DNA of 64,000 nucleotides from Ylistrum balloti (Eukaryota): the NCBI RefSeq assembly GCF_031769215.1, contig NW_026782173.1:2604001-2668000 (forward strand), in the 5' to 3' direction. Position numbers and translations under genes: made by a program. Below the pieces are notes generated by a model. That model had not been told where the DNA came from, made no database searches, and saw only the letters and a list, made by a program, of their open reading frames with translations. The stretch's first letter is position 1. Each line of letters opens with the position of its first letter. Positions 8,621 through 57,100 of the stretch are shown here, piece by piece.

Positions 8621-10779
8621 GCACATTAGCTGGACACATGTAAGAAGCTGATAGTTGGAAATGTTGATTTATTATTGGTTATTATTTATAGACAAAATGA
8701 CACGTATGTCAAGTTACCTAGTGTGTAATAAATGGTTGAGAGTAGAACGCGTAAGCGACGTCTCATAACTTTTTGTGGCTTACTTCGATGAATACTACGA
8801 ATTAAGATACACACTGAATGTGAATGAATGTAATAAGCTTGGTCTCAGACTGTAACATTATCTGTTTTACGTGCATCCAAGAGCATGCAGTCGCCGCTTT
8901 GTCCGTCCGCTTTGTCCGTCCGTTGCGGTCCGTCAGTCATAATTTTTTACAGAGTATATTACAATCACTATAAGAGGTATCAGCATGGAAGTTCAGTGTA
9001 CAAGAACTATCACTCTCTTTTGCATAATATAGGAGTTATTGCCCTTAGTTTAGTTTTCATACTTAAAATTTTGTCAGGAGCATAAAACAAAAATGATAAG
9101 AGGTATCAACCTTGTGCGTTTATTCTGGGAACATTCACCGGTTCTACCGCTTCTCTTGTATTACATGTATGTAAATGTTTTTATCTATTCCATCATTCCG
9201 TGTGTTTCTATGGCATAAAGGTAGGTTGTTGGAATTGTACCTGGGATTTTACAACCGTGCCGTGTATTTCTACTTGAGTATCAGGATTATTAAGATGTAC
9301 AAATAATGTTACAATTGATAATCTGCCACCTAACAGATAAATCGTTTCTTTGACCAATTGTTTTCCTTTGTCACTTTTTAGACGGACCTTGTTTAAAGAG
9401 GAGTTTATCACTCAATTGACATATATAGTTGTATTGATATAACAACTCATTATAACATTAGACATTTGTAACCATATCTGCAGTCGATATATTGTTTGAT
9501 TTCATCTAATTATGACTAACTATTGACTATTAATGTTCTACATTAATTACATATTACCATTTATGTAAGCATGTATATGTGTACTGAATGTTTTATTTAT
9601 GTGTTTAATGCCAATTCTTTTGTACTCTTCATTTTGGAGAAGTAAAAGAGATTAATTGACAGAAAAAATGGCTTTGGAAGTTTAAATGTTAAAAGTTTGA
9701 TAGAATATGATTTTTGAGTTTCTTGTCCCTTCACAACAACAAAAAGTCTAGGCTTGTGAATGTTGCTATACATACAACCTTATTCAACCACTGAACTGTT
9801 TTCAGATTGCTTGTAGTGATAGTATAAAAACTGTCTGTGAGAAAGACCGATTGAATTTCTCATTCTGTTTTATAGATAACAAATAACGTATTGTATTTAC
9901 TTTTCAGGAATCATTTTCAATTATTGATATGTCTTTTTTTCTAGACGTAAAAATCATGTACACATGTATTCTCCTCTAGTATGGAAAGAACAGCTCAGAA
10001 ATCGGTAGACTGAGTAGACGTGAAAGATGTGGACGAACAGCACCATGAATACACTCCAGCAGCGTGCAAGTATCTTTGCTGCTGTTTGATTAAATTATAT
10101 AGAACTTATCCCTTGATACTGACAAACAGATAGTGCTTTTATGTCATACCAACAAAAATGAAACAGAAAAACATTTTTACAAGAAAATAAAAATGTTTGT
10201 CTATGAAATAAGTACGTTGTAACGATTATAAATAAAAATTAGAGTCAAAGCTGACATTATCTCAACATTTGGTGGAACCAGGCAATATATGGCGGGTATG
10301 TAATGGTTTTCCATTTGATATCTTATATATTTTATAAGTATGACAAATTTCACGAATGTATAGCACGGAAACAATCTATTTGTATTTTGTCAACAGACAT
10401 CCATTCAATTTTCTTTTTATCCTATACACATGACAATAAATTATGGACCATTAATCTCAGTATAGAAATTTATGTAAAACTAAACGTTGTCGTATTCCTT
10501 GTAGTGTCTCGCTTCGTCTATGGTGATGAATGGCACCAAGCACAACGATATCCCTGATTAAACTGGAGTACTCACTACTCTGAGAAAACAACAGTTTGCT
10601 TCGCCATCAAAAGCAGCAGTATTACTGGTAAATTAGACATGAGCTCATGCTGTATTTAAAAATGGAACATCGAAAATTGAAAAAATGCTGAAAAATGATA
10701 TGCTTCTGGAATGGTTCAAGGTGGTATGACATACTGGCCAGTAGCTGTATGTGTTAATGTCAGCCATTGTGTTATTCCT

Positions 10780-14956: not shown

Positions 14957-15190
14957 CATACACGACAGATAAAGACGGAGGTGTCCTAGAAGGGCCGACA
15001 TACACGGCAGATAAGGACGGAGGCGTCCTAGAAGGGCGGACATACACGACAGATAAGGACGGAGGTGTCCTAGAAGGGCGGACATACACGACAGATAAGG
15101 ACGGAGGTGTCCTAGAAGGGCGGACATACACGACAGATAAAGACGGAGGTGTCCTAGAAGGGCGGACTTACACTACAGATAAGGACGGTC
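14957..15190. repeat. 42-bp tandem repeat, ~5.5 copies
   Basis: Unit ACACGACAGATAAGGACGGAGGTGTCCTAGAAGGGCGGACAT; explains the 14-aa repeat ORFs 14798..15127 and 14850..15131. Confidence 0.95.
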
Positions 15191-16294
15191 ATTCAAAGCA
15201 GGAAAGCAAGGATATGTCCTAAAAGGGCGCTTATTCATTGAGCTTAGCATCGTGCTACCGTTACGTTACCCATGGGGAAGTGAACATTTTAAAAAGTCTT
15301 ATTACATGTGTAGCTTTCTCCAAATATTTTAATATTTTGTGTTTGTATCTGTGTGGAATGTAAAACATATATTATGCATTAATGAATAATTATGCAAACA
15401 TTTCAAATATTCAAATATCTCCATATTATCAAACCCTGCAACCCTATTCTTACACTAGAAGATCTCCCAGATAACATACAATACACAAGTCTGATCTTTT
15501 ATGGAGGAAACAGAGTATCTGTTTTCGCTAATATTTTTCTGTAAAGGTAAGTTAAATGTCATAGGACAGATAACCCGTATTACAGATTAAGATGACGCCT
15601 TTAGTGTGTATTTCACATTTTCTTTGAATTATATATAATCGATACCAAAGCTCATATTGGAATTAAACAATGATTACTGGCTAGTCACATATCATTGAAT
15701 GAAAAATAAACAGGTTCACAGTAGCATTTATGGCGTCGTCTATGTGTTGGTAGAGTCACTTGAAACCATGGTTTTGATGTTTCATTTATAATTCAACGCA
15801 ACGAATAAAACCATGTCAATATTTTCGCAAAAAACTGAAATATGGTGAGGTTTTGTAAATAAGTTTGTTATAGCGGATCAGCTTCACATACGTTCAATAT
15901 ACGTCACCTATCCTGTGATTCATAATGGCACCATGTGAAAAATAATTAAATAAAATTAGGTTAAAGGAGGTGAAGACAGAAATTTAATACCACAATTTAT
16001 CAAATGCAATGCCCGGCATTACTTCACTATCTGATTTCATTAGTATTCTTGAAATAGTGTATTTTTAAAATGATTAGATTTGAAACATCGCGATTAATAT
16101 TTGTCCTGTTCAATCTATAGAATACAAAAGTGTATTTAAAACATGTCTTCAAAAGGAAACCAAATGTGATTTTCCTGGCAAGCCTTGGTTGTCGCATGAA
16201 CAAAGCTCCCTAAAAGTGTGTTCTCCTAATCTCTGCACCTATTCACTTCGCTGAACGCGGCCGTGCTTTGTGCGTTACGGTTAGCTGAGGTTTT

Positions 16295-18043: not shown

Positions 18044-21000
18044 TACAACATTTATATAGCACACTATCTATTTTGACAAAATACTCTAATGCGCTTCACA
18101 ATTACATAATAATCTTACTACAAAATTTATAGAACATGTATAACACAGTAATCAACATATGTAACACAGTAACCAAATCAAGTAAGTAGTGGTGAAAGTA
18201 TGTATATACAGGAGGTCTGCGTGAGAGTCTAAAATGCAGACGTAAACAGGTGGGTTTTAATATCCCTCTTGAATTTGGCCAGGGATTTTGACTTTCTAGT
18301 AGCAGAGGGTAAGCTGTTCCACAAAGTGGCCGCTACCTTTCCAAAGCACCGGTTACCATAAGTCACAGTCCGAGAGTTCAGAACGCACAACAAGGATTCT
18401 GTCTCCGATCGTAGTGATCATGACGGCCGATATTCAGGAGCTGTTCCAATTATTGCCTTGTATGTATACATCAAAATCTTGTACTGTGACCGGAATCGCA
18501 CGGGCAGCCAATGCAATAAGTAAAGGACTGGTGTAATGTGGTCCCTCTTTCGAGTACGGTAACTAGGCGTGCTGCGGTGTTCTGTACCCTCTGCAGGCGG
18601 CTCATACGTGTATCAGATACACCAACGAGTAACGCGTTACCATAGTCTAACCTAGAAGTAACAAGAGAATGTACCAGTGTCTTGCATGCATCTGTGGTGA
18701 TGAACTGACGGATACCCCCAATGTTTCTAATTTGGTGATAACAGGAACTGGCAATTGAGTTTATCTGTTTCTCCATGTTCAGAGAGCTATCAAAGTGTAC
18801 ACCAAGGTTTCTCACAGCTTTGACGGCCTCAATAGTTTGGGCACCGACCTTTAACTGGAGACCTTTAGTGTGTTGACACTTGTGGGAAAAGACGATCAGT
18901 TCTGTCTTTTCCTGATTGAGCTTGAGCATATTTGAGTTCATCCAAGCACTGATGTCATTTAGACAGGCTTCAAGACTTGCTACTATTATGTCCCAGTTGT
19001 CTTGAGGTCTGATAACCATGTAGATTTGTGTGTCGTCGGCATAACAATGGTACTGAAGGTTACGACGACGACAAATCTCCCCGATTGGTTTCGAATAAAG
19101 ACAGTATTTTCTAGGTCCCAGAACGGACCCCTGAGGAACTCCGAAGTCTAAGGTTTTGCTGTCTGAAACAGTTGATCCAATGGCAACGCACTGTCGTCGT
19201 TCATTCAAGTAAGACTGGGTCCTTCGTAATGCATCACCAGTCACCCCATAAGAGTACTCCAGACGCTTGAACAGTGTGCCATGGTCAATGACATCAAATG
19301 CAGCAGACAGATCAAGCATGATAAGAACCGCTCTACACTTGTTATCCAGAGCGGCAGCAATATCACTGTAGACACGAAGTAGGGCCGTCTCAGTGGAATG
19401 TCCTGCGCGATAGGCTGATTGCAAGTTGTCATGAAGACTGTTGAGATTGAGATGAGCCTCAAGTCGCTGGGACACAATCTTCACCAAGATCTTAGATAAG
19501 AAAGGGAGATTTGACACCGGACGGTAGTTCTTTAATTCTTCCTTGTTCAGTCCAGGCTTCTTCAGCAGTGGTCTTACATTAGCCTTTTTGAAACACAATG
19601 GAACCCTAGACTCTGCTAATGATTTATTCATGATTAAGGTGATCAAGGGGAGCAGTGCATCAAGACATTGCTTCAGTAAAACTGTGGGAAGCGGGTCCAG
19701 CTCACAGGATTTCGATTGAGAGTTTGTAATGATCTTGCGCAATTCTTCTTCAGTTGTTGGAGTGAACTGCGTCAAAGGTTCACCAGAGAATTGGATATCG
19801 GCATCCATGGCAGAGATGCCAGTGTCGGAAGTTGAGTTCACAACATCAATCTTTTGCTTGATTGTATTGATTTTATCCTGGATAAAATCACTGAACTTGT
19901 TGGACAAAATTTTTTCAGAAGAACAGCTTGGTAGGGCGATTTCACCAGTATGTCCCATAAGGTTTCTGGTGAGTCTAAAAATCTGTCTTGTATGCGATCC
20001 ACATTCTGTGATTTTTCCTGAATAATCCTTCTTACGTTGAATGAGTAGTGAACTGACTGCCCGACAATGTTCTCTGTATATCTGGCGATGGATGGTTAGT
20101 TTGGTCTTTCGCCAACGTTTCTCCGCCTTCCTCCGCAATTGTTTTGCATCCCGAAGTTGTTCATTGTACCAAGGCGCGTTAGGTCTGACAGTAATTACCT
20201 TTGTCTGAAGAGGTGCATGTTTCTCGATCAGAGCCTCGATACCAGAGTTATATGCTTCAACAAGACAGTCAATTCCACCCTCAGTAGTCTGAAGGACTGA
20301 AGTAACTGAATGTCTTTGATGAAATCAGGTACAATTTAGTGTGGCATAGACAGCAAGATGATCACCAGATAGGTTTCCCTTACTGTCGCTCAGACATGGA
20401 TCTGCCACTAGAATTGCTCCGTGGATTAGAGAAGTATTTCCCCTTGTGATAATCACATCTAGTGTATGACCATGTGAATGGGTAGCTTCTGTCACATGTT
20501 GTGTCATCCCCCGGGAGTCAAGGATTCCGGCGAACTGTCGGGAATCAACATTAGTGTTATCATCCAAGTGGAAATTCAGGTCGCCAGCGATAATCAGCTC
20601 CTGTGGCACTACAACCTGTTGATCGAGATATGAAGATCATTCATCAAAGAAGACTTTGTTACGGAGACCGTTCCGTTTAGAAGAGGGGGGCCTGTATATG
20701 ACGCACAGTCTGAATTGTGTATCACAAGTGGTGACGGAACACGTCATGTACTCAAAGTGTGTATAGGAATCCTCGTTGTTGGAATTCAGATTTCTCACAC
20801 TCAATCCTTTCTTAAACAGAACAACCACTCCGCCACCACGTCTGCCTTGTCTAGCATTGTGGAGAATGTCATAGCCTGTTGGTATAAGCTCAGCGAGAAT
20901 TTGGTCATCAACGGTTGAGCCCAGCCAAGTCTCCGTTATCGCTAGAATATCGATATCCCGAGATGTAATGAAGTCACTGATTGACAATGACTTGTTCTTC

Positions 21001-22219
21001 ACTCGAGCGACAACTCAGCGATACTAAATTAAGCAAGACGGCGGGCTTTTGCTGACTCTCCGTCGTTGGTTTGATGACAACCAAGTTCTCGCGCGATATA
21101 GATGTTATTGGTTTCCACCTGTTAACATCGCAGCGCGGCTGCACAATGGTTCTGATGACTGATACCTCTGCTGTTGCTGCAGCATGTCCAGACAAGGGTG
21201 GTTGAGATGTTGACATACCATTTGTGGTGATTGTTTGGACGAGATTGTTGTAATTTACACCACTGTTCCTGTTTGCTTTGCCAGGGGTACACGAAATACC
21301 GATCACACTACGTATCGGTCTGACAGCACCAATGCCTGCACGTGTGCCTCGTCTCGTACGAACGTAATTGTTGGTCCCGTTCGACGTTTGTCTAACATTC
21401 AGACATTTTCTAACACTAGATAAACTCCCTGGTCTCAGTGCCAGGAGAAGAGATCTACAGTACTGTAACATATTTAATCAATTACACAAACTTAAATGAG
21501 AACAGATTATTATACTCAATGTTATTACCCTAGTGTATTAGTGGACGAAATGTCGTTTCCGATGTAATATAGTTGAATGACAAACTCTTCAATAAAAGAA
21601 GAAATATTACTTTTGAATATGTTACAAAAGCTGATATCACCAATCTGTAAGAAATAAAGTAGACTTCACTGAGCAAGACAATATGGAAACATATACACGA
21701 CCTATCGGAAGCCTATGAAACAAAGATGGCGACCTACCCAAGCTATGCAGTATAACGATAAGATATTGCAAAGATCACCACATTGTCATGTAATACAATA
21801 ACAAATGCCCGTATCAACTTATAAGTTAACAGAACATGTTATTAGAACTAAACAGAGAAAATAAATTCAGTCAAGATGTAATATTTATCTAGATGTTTTG
21901 TTAAGTGGGCGAGATGTCAAAAAGTGGCCGAAAAATCACAAAAAGCTATATGATCTATCTACGTTAGAAATTTGAGTCTCTTCGTCCCACATCCACGGTA
22001 ATGATCTCGTGTGTTGGAAATTAAATATCTAAACTGTGAAATGATTATACTATTCACCAAGTTAGTGGGAGCGTAAAAATAAACAAGAACTACTTAAACA
22101 ATAATCTGGCCAATATCAGCCAGGATAAATTCACCAATTCGTGAAAATTATAAAAATTGTCACGAGCTAACGGGAGCAAGCCTTATCAGGCGCTAACCGG
22201 AAGTTAGATTGATTAAGAG
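18004..22219 (-). mobile_element. L2-clade LINE, probably near full length, with (ATT)n tail and 5-bp TSD CACAT
   Basis: TSD cacat at 17999-18003 and 22220-22224; (aat)n at ~18003-18043; APE plus RT ORF inside; removing it restores the host LINE RT (FFTCSC|GLIQGE). Confidence 0.88.
18229..21471 (-). pseudogene. L2 ORF2 (APE endonuclease + reverse transcriptase), disrupted
   Basis: ITETWL, GDLNFH, GHTLD, SGDH, KSCELDPLPT, NYRPVSNL, DLSAAFD, GVPQGSVLGP, YADDTQ, HITPVL..LHWLPV, KTHLF. Lesions: +1 nt near 21003, in-frame TGA at 20637-20639, deletion/frameshift near 20325, frameshift near 18560. Confidence 0.95.
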
Positions 22220-50745: not shown

Positions 50746-50898
50746 CCAGTATTACAGAATACCCTCAAACACTGTTGTTTCAGTATTACAGAATACCCTC
50801 AAACACTGTTGTTTCAGTATTACAGAATACCCTCAAACACTGTTGTTTCAGTATTACAGAATACCCTCAAACACTGTTGTTCCAGTATTACAGAATAC
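50746..50898. repeat. 34-bp tandem repeat, ~4.5 copies
   Basis: Unit CAGTATTACAGAATACCCTCAAACACTGTTGTTT; starts at 50761 and 50795. Confidence 0.95.
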
Positions 50899-51537: not shown

Positions 51538-51993
51538 TTATCTGTCTTTTTTGTTTTCTGTGTGAGTCTCCGCGTCACTTATGACTTGGTCATTGTCAGA
51601 ACTTGGAGGAGACACTGATTCACATCCGAGCATCTCATCCGTTGATCGACAAGACCGATCGGTAGACAAGTCCTGATAACGGGGAAAGGTAAGGAAAGAT
51701 CCTATAGTGAGGAGAACACCAGCCACTATGCACGCCACTCCTAAGATGGACAAAGGATCTGTAGGCAGAACGCCCCATGTCTGATCTACGTATGCAGCCA
51801 GCAGACATAGAAATCCTTCTATCAGGGCCACCACTCCCAGTACTCTCAGAATTTTGTTGGCCTTCTGCCTCGTATAACACCTCGGAATTCCTCCTTTACC
51901 GTTAAGGGATTCGTTGGAGGGATGCTGACGCCTAGATTTCTCGCACATGGTACTGCCTTGTATTGTTGTGTTCCCAAGATCTGGCTCTGTCAT
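51538..51993 (-). CDS. Uncharacterised 151-aa two-TM membrane protein with C-terminal KKxx (NKKDR*)
   Basis: ATG at 51993, 11 nt after acceptor tttcttcag| (exon starts 52004); candidate UTR-intron donor CAG|gtaagt at 52649; TM1 ILRVLGVVALIEGFLCLLAAYV, TM2 LSILGVACIVAGVLLTIGSFLTF; more GC-rich than the flanks; stop TAA at 51538-51540. Confidence 0.8.
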   Translation of the reverse strand: MTEPDLGNTTIQGSTMCEKSRRQHPSNESLNGKGGIPRCYTRQKANKILRVLGVVALIEGFLCLLAAYVDQTWGVLPTDPLSILGVACIVAGVLLTIGSFLTFPRYQDLSTDRSCRSTDEMLGCESVSPPSSDNDQVISDAETHTENKKDR

Positions 51994-52649
51994 ACTTAAC
52001 TTTTCTGAAGAAATAAGTAAATTGCAAAATTTGAAAAACTGAGATACTGTGATTTTATGCTTATAACACTCAACGTAAGTCCTACGTATAACCCGACTCC
52101 AAGGACGGGAAGCCAACGGTAAAGGCTTGAATTAAAAGATATTAGGATTAAATGGTTTGAAAGCATGACTGGAAAAATCAGAGTTTTATGGAAAGTCACA
52201 TTTACACTGTGGTCGGGAGGGGCATAACATATGGTTTGATTAGAAATATGGCTTTAAAATGGTGACCCCCTAGAGGAGTACTTAAGCAATGATGAAGTGG
52301 ATACCCTGCACGTTTTAGTATGTAATGACACACATCAACGAATACTATGCGGAGCGGGTAACTGCTCGTTTTAAAAACACTGTCAGCTTTACGCCGCAAT
52401 GTTTATGCAAATTTATTCATTTTAACACTTTAAAGTGCAGATTTATGGTTTGAATTGCAAAATATTTTCAATCTTTTTTCTTTGAATAATTGCTTTATCT
52501 TGACAATGTCTAAATCATCTCTGGCACTTAATAACATCTTAAACAAAATGCGTCATTACTTAATTCCAGAAAATATCGAAAATTACCAATTCTTAAGCGT
52601 TCTGCTATACATTGCTGTAAAGCAGTATAATATTGTATAGGTACTTACC

Positions 52650-53243
52650 TGATAGTTTACAGAAACGTGATACTTGTTCTATATCTACCAAAGCTGCAAT
52701 GGTGTGAATAGGATTATCACGTATTAAATTTGGAAAATTACATGATACGTGGCCGATGTAAGGTGTTACACGTCGATACAGTACATCACGAATGTCTGCA
52801 TGCTGACTTGGAATTCTATAATTAGAAATGTGTCATACTATTATAAAATTGTTTGTGTAGAACTGGCATGCCGATCTTTTGTTACAATAAATTAATGTCA
52901 GTCTTATTATTTTTTCTTTTAATTATATTGACATATATGAAATAAAATCGTTCAATTTAACAAGTAATTTGTTATACAGACTATAATTACGTATAGCATG
53001 CCTCTATTTGTTTCAGCGATGTTAAATACGTAGTAAGGGAGATAACTCTAACTAACCCTGGCCACGTGGCCGAATGTTACGTTGCTGTCACCGCGTCCTT
53101 CCATATGAAATAAATGTAAACCATGCAGTCGGTTGTGATGTGTTATCCCGGGTATATAAATATGTCAGATGGTGAAAAATTTAAACATTAGAATTTTTAC
53201 ACACCAAGCTAGAACGATAAAGGACAACACTCTCAAGTAAAAC
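52650..53243. promoter_or_regulatory. Candidate bidirectional promoter of the two-TM gene and the Sar1-like gene
   Basis: Head-to-head genes under 600 bp apart; TATATAAA at 53153-53160; palindrome GGCCACGTGGCC at 53060-53071; second GCCACGT (minus strand) at ~52747-52754. Confidence 0.5.
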
Positions 53244-55706
53244 ATGTTTCTGTGGGATTGGTTACATTCGCTCCTGTATTATTTTGGTAAGTATTCATTG
53301 TATATACATATATATTACAATGTTCAGGTGACTATATGCTTGTTTGTGGCATTCAATTAGTATTATTATTATTATGATTATTTCAATAACAGCGGATTAA
53401 CATAATTGATTGAACACACTTATTTGTCAATATTCAACAAAGGCATCAATGTACTGTCTCTAAATAGTTCAACTGGAATATATTTAGAGTGTGTAATAAC
53501 ATACTATTTAGCAGAGATTATTTCTCTCTCAATGTGACTGCGTTTTGTTTTGGATTTGGGCTGATAATTAGGCATCGGAAAGTTACTACTAATCAATGGC
53601 TATCGCATTAATCTTAATTGGAATTCGAGTTTTTTTATGTTATTTATGGTATTTATGGTATTTTCAGGGTTCAACAGAAATGCTAAAATTGTGATTGTTG
53701 GCCTGGACAACGCCGGGAAATCTACTTTATTAAACATGTTGAAGACTGGGCGCGCAGCACAGTTTCCACCAACAGGTCAGGCACGTAAGTAGTATTACAT
53801 TCATTAAACAATGCATATGATATTAGTAAAGTGTGTCAGAAATATTACCTCTGGCTCGCTCTCAAGTGCTATATGTATCGGAACTGGATCAAACGACTAA
53901 CGGTGACGAGGGATACAAGGTTCGAATCCCGATTCCATCCCAACTTGTCTATACAATCATATACAGCTGTATGTGGGCAGTTACGTATCACATCAGTGTA
54001 AATAGTTTGTATAATTTTGCTGTAAAGTAAGTGATATATGTTTGAATATTGTCTATGTACAAATATGTATAATTGTACAAGTATACATTATTATCATATC
54101 ATACATTTGTATTCGTATTAAGATTTATATTGTAAGGTACTATTTGCATGTAGTTATATAACAGACATTTATCGTGTCCTAGGGAGTGAAGAAATGACTA
54201 TTGGCGGACTTACCATACAAGCATACGATCTCGGGGGCCACGCAATAAGTGAGTACAATGTTTAGAACAAGAAAAAGGTAATTATAGATCGCTCATTTTC
54301 AGTTAATCATTTTTTGTTAGAAAAAAAATGAGTAAACATTTGTTGAGATTCTCTTTCAGTTTCCGAAATCAATATATATGTCAGTATGTGTGTGTACGAG
54401 GAAAACTCTTCAAAAGCTCACTTGAGGCGCGATATACGGGTTGTAAAAGCATTTTGAAAGTACGTGCATTTCAGCACTTCTCATAAAGTTGGCATTATTC
54501 TAGATAACACAATAGTGTTCGCCTTTTGTTTCTGATTCATTCACTGGTTTATTTTATACAGTGCGGAGAGTTTGGCTGGATTACTTCCCCGCAGTAGATG
54601 GAATTGTCTATATGGTGGATGCGGCGGACAGGGAGAGACTTCAGGAAAGCAAAACCGAACTCACGGTAATTAACACAATAGAACACACGAAACACAGCGT
54701 TCAGAACTGTCACAAGACAAACTTGATAAATCAATTTGAATTGAACATAAGATTTAAACACAATGATTGATACAAATGTCATCAGTTGTTGGTTTCTGTA
54801 CAATCACACAAATCGAAAATTTTGTAATGATTTTATCTGTTGTTTGCAAATGTGGCCAATCAGTAAAAGTATCTCCCTTGTCAATTTAGAGGATCCTTGA
54901 TGACCCGGAAATCCCTCCAATACCTATCCTCATACTTGGCAACAAGACTGACAAAGGAACAGCTATTGGCAAGGAGGAGTTGATCATGTCGTTTGACCTA
55001 CAACGTCGCCTGTATAAGGTATAATCAGCTCTACTTGTTATTGTTGTCATCCCTGTATATATAACACACTTAATGACAGACAAGATGTGTTATTGTTGTC
55101 ATCCCTGTATTTATATATAACACAGTTGATGGCAGACAGGACTTGTTATTTTCATCTATATTTACACATTGTATAACAATGACTGAGGACAGACAATACC
55201 TGTTATTGTCATTTTCCTTGTATTTACATTATATAGCGGTAAATCAGTAGTTGAGAACAGACAGGACGTGTAACTGCCATTCCACAGTTATTTACACATT
55301 GTATAACATTTTTTGGGGACAGACAATATCTATTATTGTTATTTTTCCTGTATTAACACATCGCAAACATAAGTTGAGGACGGACAATACATGATATTAT
55401 CCTCCCCCTTATATCTATACAATCTTATCCCATATCATATGAATTAAGCCGTCGTCGAAAGAATTTAATGTTTCTGACAAGCTTTAGTTCACCTCCTCCT
55501 ATTGTCATATTGCTATCACATGTATGAAGAAATATTTACCGTGTCTGATAGAACAAATCGTTGCTTGTTTCCAGGAGACGGGATATAACGAAACAGAGAA
55601 TGGACGTCCTCCTCTTCGTGAGTGTCAACTATTTATGTGTAGTCTGTTAAAGAAACAAGGGTACGGGGACGCCTTCCGGTGGCTGGCGAAGGCCACGAAA
55701 AAGTAG
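53244..55706 (+). CDS. SAR1: Sar1-family small GTPase (divergent paralog), 196 aa, 6 coding exons
   Basis: Exons 53244-53286, 53668-53784, 54183-54248, 54562-54665, 54890-55018, 55575-55706 (591 nt, phases consistent). MFLWDW amphipathic N-terminus, G1 [10 protein letters not shown]3 [20 protein letters not shown]4 [22 protein letters not shown]. Confidence 0.95.
53850..53945 (+). mobile_element. Possible tRNA-derived SINE relic in Sar1 intron 2
   Basis: B-box GGTTCGAATCCC at 53919-53930; A-box and cloverleaf not convincing. Confidence 0.25.
55025..55400. repeat. Degenerate ~55-60-bp tandem repeat in Sar1 intron 5
   Basis: Recurring ttgttattgtcat...tgtatttacacattgtataaca...gaggacagaca units, about 6-7 copies. 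Confidence 0.7.
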
Positions 55707-56534: not shown

Positions 56535-57100
56535 GTGTATAGTACACGAAGGCTCTGGGTTGAGTACGAAGGAACTTTGTAGAATACGAAGGTTGTGTGT
56601 AGAGTACGAATGCTCTGTGAAGAGTACGAATGCTCTGTGTAGAGTACGAATGCTCTGTGTAGAGTACGAATGTTCTGTGTTGAGTGCGAATGTTCTGTGT
56701 AGAATGCGAATGTTCTGTGTTACGTACGAATGCTCTGTGTAGAGTACGAATGCTCTGTGTAGAGTACGAATGTTCTGTGTTTAGTGCGAATGTTCTGTGT
56801 TACGTACGAATGTTCTGTGTTACGTACGAATGATCTGTGTAGAGTACGAAGGTTGTGTGTAGAGTACGAATGTTCTGTGTAGAGTACGAATGCTCTGTGT
56901 AGAGTACGAATGTTCTGTGTAGAGTACGAATGTTCTGTGTAGAGTACGAATGCTCTGTGTAGAGTACGAATGTTCTGTGTAGAGTACGAATGTTCTACGA
57001 ATGCTCTGTGTGTAGAAGGTTGTGTGTACGAATGTACTGTGTGCAACGAATGCTCTGTGTAGACTACGAATGCTCTGTGTAGAGTACGAATGTACTGTGC
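56535..57100. repeat. 20-bp tandem minisatellite, ~28 copies
   Basis: Unit TG(C/T)TCTGTGTAGAGTACGAA; explains ORFs 56518-57213. Confidence 0.96.

Follow-up and report, generated by a model that had tools for sequence, protein, structure and literature searches.

A Sar1-like GTPase gene and a KKxx-tailed membrane hairpin gene lie head to head in bivalves

Why should a gene for a small, two-helix membrane protein sit head to head with a gene for a Sar1-like GTPase? The question is raised by a locus of the scallop Ylistrum balloti, which we analysed within a 64,000 bp stretch of DNA (hereafter the window: assembly GCF_031769215.1, contig NW_026782173.1, positions 2,604,001–2,668,000, forward strand). 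A preliminary description, made from the letters of the window, had suggested that the membrane protein may be a lineage-specific cargo adaptor, co-expressed with its own Sar1. We arrive at a modified answer: that the locus is a conserved pair of bivalve genes that act early in the secretory pathway, in which the membrane protein (hereafter the hairpin) is retrieved by the COPI coat, cycles between the endoplasmic reticulum (ER) and the Golgi, and is more likely to be a partner or escort than a cargo receptor. We put the probability of this reading at roughly one half. Taken singly, neither component is new in kind (one is a Sar1 paralog, the other a dilysine-tagged hairpin), but the hairpin family itself is undescribed.

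The hairpin gene lies on the reverse strand. That its 151-aa open reading frame (ORF) encodes two transmembrane (TM) segments, as first described, is confirmed by the ORF, by hydropathy and by AlphaFold helices. The AlphaFold model, for which the family alignment served as input, contains helices at residues 39–73 and 79–102 with a predicted local distance difference test (pLDDT) score of ~90; residues 1–35 and 107–151 are disordered (tail pLDDT <50; mean pLDDT 60). The 15 residues before TM1 carry a charge of +4, and the turn between the helices contains no positive and two negative residues, a distribution that fits the earlier argument from basic residues before TM1. Both termini are predicted to be cytosolic, on the grounds of (i) the positive-inside charge pattern, which holds throughout the family, (ii) two confident helices, and (iii) an even number of TM segments. 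The protein ends in ENKKDR, placing lysines at positions -4 and -3, and the same tail contains a DAE tripeptide; both features are as originally reported.

A splice acceptor is present just upstream of the hairpin ATG in every ortholog locus (including loci L004, L005, L008, L009 and L010). The candidate 5' exon of the window gene is collinear with exon 1 as annotated for the Argopecten ortholog, where the exon ends ATCAG/GTGAGT. The candidate exon contains no in-frame ATG, and read-through meets a stop (AAA AGT TAA) in exon 2. An exact look-up of the 151-aa protein returned no record, so the gene is unannotated in the Ylistrum genome. A 34-bp repeat (4.5 copies, 99% matches) occupies positions 50747–50898, downstream of the hairpin gene.

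Is the hairpin protein a solitary ORF, or does it belong to a family? A word-index search recovered one relative, an "uncharacterized protein" of Argopecten irradians that ends in ENKKDK and is 40% identical overall and ~80% identical in the hairpin core. A profile search of 1.84 billion cluster representatives gave 10 matches, seven of which are credible family members, and a second word search using the family profile added four relatives; E-values of the orthologs range from 2.6e-22 to 3e-14. The sources include a gill metagenome of Acesta (file clam) and a "hypothetical protein" of Solemya velum, the others being Logan, ENA or JGI contigs. Only two annotated family proteins (from Argopecten and Solemya) are found among the 1.84 billion representatives; short single-exon membrane proteins of the hairpin type are largely absent from bivalve gene annotations. 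No Pfam family reaches its cut-off for the window protein or for any of the eight family members searched (sub-threshold matches to Pam17, Claudin_2 and TMEM100 are TM noise), and look-alikes in the ESM Atlas score at most 0.80, which is chance level. The hairpin proteins form a genuine family, hitherto undescribed.

Conservation in this family sits in the membrane, in the luminal turn and in a mid-membrane E/Q of helix 1. Across the eight aligned sequences the turn follows the invariant pattern D-x5-LP-x-D-x-L, with invariant columns D70, L76, P77, D79 and L81. Between Ylistrum and Argopecten, omega is 0.071 in the TM core and 0.54 in the N-terminal tail. Several members carry a Cys pair directly after TM2 (CPGC, CKKCHHNC, YCGGRC or NPGC), while the scallop proteins have no pair there; such a juxtamembrane pair could be a palmitoylation or metal site.

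The sole conserved cytosolic feature of the hairpin protein is KKxx. Lysines occupy positions -4 and -3 in 10/10 core sequences from ~7 lineages, the C-termini being ENKKDR, ENKKDK, SSKKEQ (twice), SLKKEQ, EDKKSK, ENKKEQ (twice), ENKKDQ and RDKKIN. The preliminary description had named conservation of KKxx in orthologs, in advance, as a test of its proposal; the motif is retained in every core member while the rest of the tail (36–58 residues) diverges to the point of being unalignable. When tails were shuffled, KK fell at -4/-3 in 0.1–2% of trials per sequence. Retention in 10/10 sequences against these odds shows that KKxx is under selection.

When exposed to the cytosol at a C-terminus, KKxx is bound by the WD40 propellers of the COPI subunits alpha- and beta'-COP, and this drives Golgi-to-ER retrieval. 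The dilysine signal requires lysines at -3 and at either -4 or -5, counted from the C-terminus, and the window protein, with its terminal KKDR, has both residues. (The KKxx motif is summarised in PMC13714300.) The motif is very likely to be functional. Since a cytosolic KKxx sends proteins that have escaped to the Golgi back to the ER, the hairpin protein is most likely ER-resident or ER-Golgi-cycling: it would exit the ER and then be brought back, giving residence in the ER and at the ER-Golgi interface.

One branch of the family departs from this pattern. The P0009 group is a divergent, 129-aa subfamily with the same hairpin and an LPHD[PL]L turn, but its C-terminus, KCFK[GS]D, departs from the canonical dilysine motif. 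Members of this group (loci L005–L007, and many ENA and JGI metagenomes) adjoin a BTB-BACK-Jacalin gene, and some cluster members continue beyond the stop.

The same tails bear on the role first proposed for the hairpin protein, namely that of a cargo adaptor that would leave the ER through a Sec24-binding DxE signal, with a dedicated Sar1 driving its export, and return through KKxx. In keeping with such a role, KKxx is conserved, the tail is acidic in all members (10–14 D/E), and linkage to a Sar1-like gene is also conserved (see below). However, DxE is found in only 5/13 hairpin tails and at non-homologous positions, leaving acidity as the one property common to the tails, and a luminal turn of ~11 residues provides no luminal cargo domain, such that only membrane-embedded cargo would be recognisable. 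Cargo receptors of the ERGIC-53/p24 type, to which the hairpin had been compared, do pair ER export with dilysine-type retrieval through signals in the cytosolic tail, but their type I architecture places a large cargo-binding domain in the lumen, whereas the hairpin exposes ~11 residues there. The evidence supports neither the DxE signal nor the cargo-receptor comparison, and we consider a cargo adaptor of this kind quite improbable.

We now turn to the neighbouring gene, which occupies positions 53244–55706 on the forward strand and consists of six exons; all introns are GT-AG, and the product is an intact protein of 196 aa. Pfam Arf matches were obtained on its exons (2e-10 and 2.2e-11), and for the two exons tested (2 and 4) solved Sar1 structures outscore Arf/Arl structures. 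The spliced product contains the G1 P-loop GxxxxGK[ST], G3 DxxG, G4 NKxD and G5 motifs, and shows two features of Sar1: a His, not Gln, after DxxG (Sar1 H79), and an amphipathic helix in place of Gly2. Canonical Sar1 (SAR1A/B, yeast Sar1p) is the GTPase that nucleates COPII; Sec12 activates it, and it recruits Sec23/24. In common with canonical Sar1, the product has ~195 aa, an unmyristoylated amphipathic helix, and the motifs GLDNAGK[ST], PT, DLGGH, NKxD and FMCS. It differs from canonical Sar1 in (i) a one-residue deletion after the N-terminal helix, (ii) a more aromatic helix (YYFGF), (iii) GKS for GKT, (iv) Tyr as the Walker B aromatic residue, and (v) in the scallop proteins, a 3-aa insert in the TTGKG loop. 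A 20-bp tandem repeat (27.7 copies, 56546–57099) lies just downstream of the gene.

Further changes occur beside switch I. Across the bivalve Sar1-like proteins, the canonical Thr at position 60 (in HPT) is replaced by Arg, and canonical EEL becomes EM (L to M). The PT motif aligns with residues 53–54 of yeast Sar1, and the Thr matching residue 54, which we take to be the Mg-binding Thr, is retained. Loss of the switch-I magnesium Thr was considered and rejected, as the changed Thr is the next one, in HPT. Omega against Argopecten is 0.087 in the Sar1-like gene, which, like the hairpin gene in its core, evolves under purifying selection (~0.07–0.09 for the two). The protein would be expected still to insert in the ER membrane and hydrolyse GTP, with altered contacts beside switch I; such lineage-wide changes could alter its binding partners.

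Is this gene an additional Sar1, or simply the Sar1 of bivalves? One alternative holds that it is the fast-evolving canonical Sar1 of bivalves, or else a member of the ancient SarB paralog group, with its pairing to the hairpin gene incidental. The bivalve proteins share only 45–56% identity with any canonical Sar1, the window protein reaching 45–52% against those from animals, fungi, plants and protists, whereas canonical Sar1s of animals, fungi and plants are ~62–87% identical among themselves. In a tree of 47 sequences—all Sar1, with no Arf/Arl outgroup—the three bivalve proteins form one clade (SH-aLRT, the Shimodaira-Hasegawa-like approximate likelihood ratio test, 96) beside Trichoplax SAR1b (94). 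As a control for long branches, the tree was rebuilt without the scallops or without Solemya; each time, what remained was still placed beside Trichoplax SAR1b. The canonical sequences for identities and trees came from a search with a composite alignment of Sar1-like exon pieces, used for this purpose only; the 120 matches listed were all generic Sar1s, with no molluscs among them. By its placement, the Sar1-like gene appears to be an animal-lineage Sar1 duplicate on a long branch.

The published record bears on the same point. In Vargova et al. 2021 (PMC8358228), a typical Sar1 is stated to exist in all taxa examined, and the typical Sar1s of Lottia, Capitella and Helobdella given there are near-identical by eye. 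The bivalve Sar1-like proteins are, again by eye, unlike these typical lophotrochozoan Sar1s. Our use of the word paralog rests on this published statement together with the divergence of the protein: the earlier assignment to Sar1 is upheld by motifs, PDB matches and tree, and it is the "paralog" part that leans on divergence and literature. On the other side, the Sar1-like protein begins MFLWDW, as do the canonical Sar1s of Lottia and the annelids, and the canonical Sar1 of scallops is not among the sequences compared. As for SarB, the same source describes it as a protist Sar1 paralog that co-occurs with typical Sar1 and has no known function; Trp is typical of its Walker B motif, it has intron positions of its own, and it is marked absent in every animal row examined, including Lottia (PMC8358228). 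The bivalve proteins resemble SarB in being Sar1-like paralogs, but they have Tyr in Walker B and group with animal Sar1 in the tree. For these reasons, and on the animal rows examined, identity with SarB was rejected; taken as a whole, the alternative that the gene is a canonical Sar1 or a SarB member is very improbable indeed.

A closer parallel is CteSar1b of Capitella teleta (ELU10821.1), which Vargova et al. 2021 (PMC8358228) enter as "Sar1" by similarity only. Like the bivalve protein, it is a second, divergent lophotrochozoan Sar1 beside a typical one, and shares GKS, AYD-GGH and a DAFRW ending (a comparison by eye only). With a similarly divergent Sar1b listed there for an annelid, and with a hairpin family that spans Bivalvia, the term "lineage-specific" in the preliminary description was an overstatement.

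How general is the pairing of the two genes? A head-to-head Sar1-like neighbour is present at 4/4 hairpin loci with enough flanking DNA: those of Ylistrum, Argopecten, Solemya and Logan contig L008. The remaining hairpin contigs have only 430–650 bp of upstream flank. In the window, the distance from the candidate hairpin 5' exon (52649) to the Sar1-like ATG is 595 bp, in agreement with the initial estimate of under 600 bp. In Argopecten irradians, the hairpin ortholog is head to head with a 196-aa Arf-family gene that has the same six exons and 80% identity to the window Sar1-like protein. In Solemya velum, the Sar1-like gene that is head to head with the hairpin gene has the same exon structure as in the window; its product is 50% identical and, like the window protein, lacks one residue after the N-terminal helix and carries GKS, Arg at the HPT position, EM and AYDLGGH. 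Logan L008 has, on the strand opposite to the hairpin gene, a Sar1-like exon 1 (MFFWDWIRSFLSYFG) with a GT donor behind it, 1.29 kb upstream of the hairpin ATG. As a control, a metagenome scan with Sar1-like exon 2 gave 80 microbial-eukaryote Sar1 loci, 0/80 of which contain a hairpin gene; no close ortholog of the exon was found among these 80 loci (identity at most 66–72% over the matched part).

Conserved head-to-head linkage, which had also been set beforehand as a test, is thus seen in scallops, in the protobranch Solemya and in a further, fourth lineage. The linkage spans the Protobranchia-Autobranchia split, the deepest among bivalves, and we are confident that conservation of the pair is genuine. 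It is suggestive, albeit as a single case, that the sole subfamily without a Sar1-like neighbour (P0009) is also the one without a canonical KKxx.

Two details of the annotated Solemya locus (L002; GCA_048127485.1, 10001–15606) may be recorded here. Firstly, the 290-aa model KAL5018514.1 fuses two tandem hairpin copies, A (10001–10436), which contains an in-frame stop behind helix 2, and B (15163–15603), which is intact. Secondly, the annotated Solemya Sar1-like gene uses an upstream first exon (ATG 9440) and not the conserved MFVFDW exon (8873–8915). In the scallops, synteny reaches a third gene: a 7tm_1 G-protein-coupled receptor gene (window 47713–49431, forward strand, three ORF pieces in different frames) is convergent with the hairpin gene, and a 7tm_1 gene of Argopecten (L001, from 22127) holds the same relative position.

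If linkage is conserved, what does the DNA between the genes contain? There are two closely spaced divergent promoters; one shared promoter, with co-expression of the genes, is no more than plausible. The hairpin TATA-like element lies ~165 bp upstream of the candidate first-exon donor, in a region collinear with that of exon 1 in Argopecten. On the Sar1-like side, TATA(A/T)A is found 57–101 bp before the ATG in all four species, and an ACGT-core element 117–274 bp before it, as CACGTG or ACGTGGC in three species (Ylistrum, Argopecten and Solemya) and TGACGT in the fourth. The ACGTGGC and CACGTG elements presumably resemble the boxes of CREB3/CrebA-type secretory-gene regulators. The two TATA-type elements are ~330 bp apart in the window and ~1.1 kb apart in Argopecten, where the element GCATTTCTAATAATAGAAC occurs twice in the intergenic region (L001 8657–10000), ~750 bp apart; a local duplication or insertion carrying the second copy of the element has widened this region. 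With respect to the usual definition of a bidirectional pair (starts less than ~1 kb apart), the orientation is divergent, and the distances are those from the candidate exon and TATA-like elements, not from mapped transcription starts. We consider it somewhat more likely than not that the two genes are co-regulated.

Polymorphism was assessed from a DNA run of another individual, the contigs of which cross introns and intergenic DNA and show ~0.7% differences. The Sar1-like exons of this second individual (591 bp) contain no single-nucleotide polymorphisms; under neutrality ~5 would be expected there, given the 28 differences in the ~3.4 kb covered. The hairpin coding sequence contains two differences, both non-synonymous (R21K and T111I) and both in the poorly conserved tails.

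Table 1. Positions of the elements of the gene pair within the window.
Feature	Position	Strand	Basis
Hairpin coding sequence, 151 aa from first ATG, two TM; stop TAA at 51538–51540	51541–51993	-	ORF
C-terminal KKDR, the dilysine (KKxx) motif closing a disordered, acidic tail of ~48 aa	51541–51552	-	Sequence
TM helix 2, aa ~81–103	51685–51753	-	Kyte-Doolittle hydropathy, AlphaFold
Short predicted luminal turn, aa 70–80, DQTWGVLPTDP	51754–51786	-	Most conserved part of hairpin protein
TM helix 1, aa ~47–69, with conserved mid-membrane E/Q (E59)	51787–51855	-	Kyte-Doolittle hydropathy, AlphaFold, family alignment
Start of coding exon; splice acceptor cttatttcttcag (cut at 52004/52005), 11 nt upstream of ATG	51994–52004	-	Sequence
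Candidate non-coding 5' exon; donor CAG/GTAAGT fixes 3' end at 52649, 5' end estimated	52649–52790	-	Argopecten alignment
Conserved TATA-like element TTTCTAATTATAGAA, upstream of candidate hairpin 5' exon	52814–52828	-	Argopecten conservation
Sar1-like promoter block: palindromic E-box GCCACGTGGCCG, then TTACGTTGC	53061–53095	+	35 bp near-identical in Argopecten
TATA box TATATAA, 91 bp upstream of Sar1-like ATG	53153–53159	+	Sequence
Sar1-like exon 1: aromatic N-terminal amphipathic helix, no Gly2	53244–53286	+	Homologous exon in Argopecten, Solemya, Logan L008
Sar1-like exon 2: P-loop GLDNAGKS, switch-I threonine (PPT)	53668–53784	+	Best PDB matches Sar1
Sar1-like exon 3: Walker B YDLGGH with Sar1-specific catalytic His	54183–54248	+	Alignment
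Sar1-like exon 4: switch II and alpha-3	54562–54665	+	PDB SAR1B 39 bits, Arl2 29 bits
Sar1-like exon 5: NKTD (NKxD guanine-specificity motif)	54890–55018	+	Alignment
Sar1-like exon 6: FMCS (G5), GYGDAFRWL; stop TAG at 55704–55706	55575–55706	+	Alignment

Elsewhere in the window, a non-LTR (long terminal repeat) retrotransposon remnant lies on the reverse strand at 18471–21471; it comprises a 555-aa ORF with an RVT_1 match (3.8e-29) and an adjacent ORF with a piece of Exo_endo_phos.

Do the two genes work together, or are they merely neighbours? They may be kept adjacent by bidirectional regulatory DNA, shared or interleaved, with the hairpin an ER-resident COPI client doing an unrelated job, such as lipid handling or complex assembly. 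That each gene has a TATA-like element of its own, that the spacing varies from 0.6 to 1.3 kb, and that the cytosolic tails of the hairpin are disordered and fast-evolving would all fit such an arrangement, as would the diversity of jobs among known KKxx/KxKxx hairpins (lipid droplets for TMEM263, V-ATPase assembly for Vma21). Against it, orientation and adjacency are kept in 4/4 lineages, including across the Protobranchia-Autobranchia split; the motifs of the two products put both at the same ER-Golgi trafficking step; and, as noted, the single subfamily that lacks a Sar1-like neighbour also lacks a canonical KKxx. We regard mere adjacency as possible, though rather unlikely.

The reading that we prefer, a gene pair of the early secretory pathway, would run as follows. 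The Sar1-like gene would be an extra, fast-evolving Sar1 copy, derived from the animal Sar1 lineage, that retains the parts for ER-membrane insertion and GTP cycling. The two genes, together since the deepest bivalve split, would be transcribed divergently from neighbouring TATA-type promoters 0.3–1.3 kb apart; we infer a pair that is co-regulated and acts at one step. Since only the turn reaches the lumen and the tails lack order, the hairpin would have its conserved surfaces in the bilayer, the place that the amphipathic helix of a Sar1 occupies. The hairpin might then serve the Sar1-like GTPase at the level of the membrane as partner, regulator or escort, a role that we favour over that of a luminal-cargo receptor. 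A direct functional partnership between the two proteins is a tentative proposal, somewhat less likely than not.

Several observations weigh against this reading. Firstly, the cytosolic tails of the hairpin, needed for contact with the GTPase, are disordered and, apart from KKxx, poorly conserved, which means that any contact would have to take place in or at the membrane. Secondly, shared regulatory DNA can, on its own, keep head-to-head pairs together. Thirdly, the intergenic distance is not fixed, with start codons ~1.1–1.35 kb apart in the other species. Fourthly, of the two Solemya hairpin copies, the one that adjoins the Sar1-like gene is cut short by a stop behind TM2, and the intact one (KKIN) is located 5 kb further out. 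Fifthly, the P0009 group lacks a canonical KKxx and, over 10 kb to each side, any Sar1-like neighbour. Finally, the paralog status of the Sar1-like gene is a provisional one, based on divergence and the literature, and the sole public sequencing run found for Ylistrum is of DNA, not RNA. In sum, the interpretation offered in the preliminary description survives as regards KKxx conservation and linkage, but loses the DxE signal, the likeness to cargo receptors and the restriction to one lineage.

A bolder version can be formulated, in which the hairpin is a dedicated bilayer receptor, activator or effector of the Sar1-like GTPase, and the pair constitutes a second, lophotrochozoan-specific start of ER export, parallel to Sec12 and canonical Sar1. 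This is speculative and, in our estimation, unlikely. If it were true, KKxx would confine the membrane partner, and hence activation of the GTPase, to the ER, and the second export route might serve heavy secretion of shell-matrix, byssus or mucus proteins.

Sar1 is usually regarded as the single, highly conserved entry to the secretory pathway. Extra Sar1 paralogs (SarB, Capitella Sar1b) are on record without a known function, and the divergent copy described here comes with a built-in clue: a linked, co-inherited membrane protein with an ER-retrieval tag, from a family undescribed in any database. The question of what extra Sar1 copies are for can thereby be turned into a concrete experiment, in an animal group dependent on massive, specialised secretion. 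A literature search for a bivalve Sar1 paralog gave nothing relevant, and no report of a conserved Sar1-like/hairpin pairing was found in it.

What, then, do known systems suggest about the hairpin? Yeast Vma21p is a 77-aa protein with two TM segments and a C-terminal KKED, which escorts the V0 sector of the vacuolar ATPase (V-ATPase) from the ER and is retrieved by COPI. Like the bivalve protein, it is a small hairpin with both termini in the cytosol, a C-terminal KKxx and no luminal domain; the two have no detectable sequence similarity, and the bivalve protein differs in its long, disordered acidic tails and its conserved luminal turn. A second parallel is provided by yeast Mst27 and Mst28, which reportedly (in work from 2003 credited to Sandmann and colleagues) combine KKXX with a COPII-binding motif. 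These two-TM proteins of the DUP240 family cycle between ER and Golgi, and their overexpression suppresses the lethality of COPI mutants, suggesting that COPI-binding cargo can stimulate vesicle formation (PMC5166505). The family is a fungal one, and no sequence relationship to the bivalve hairpin has been shown. Thirdly, human TMEM263 is an ER-resident hairpin of ~116 aa (TM segments at 38–60 and 80–102, joined by a luminal linker) that binds COPI in dilysine fashion and has a role in lipid droplet biogenesis (PMC13714300). TMEM263 and the bivalve hairpin share no Pfam or profile match, and the TMEM263 gene is not linked to a Sar1 gene. It is by analogy with these three systems—Vma21p, Mst27/28 and TMEM263—that a role as partner, regulator or escort is favoured for the bivalve hairpin.

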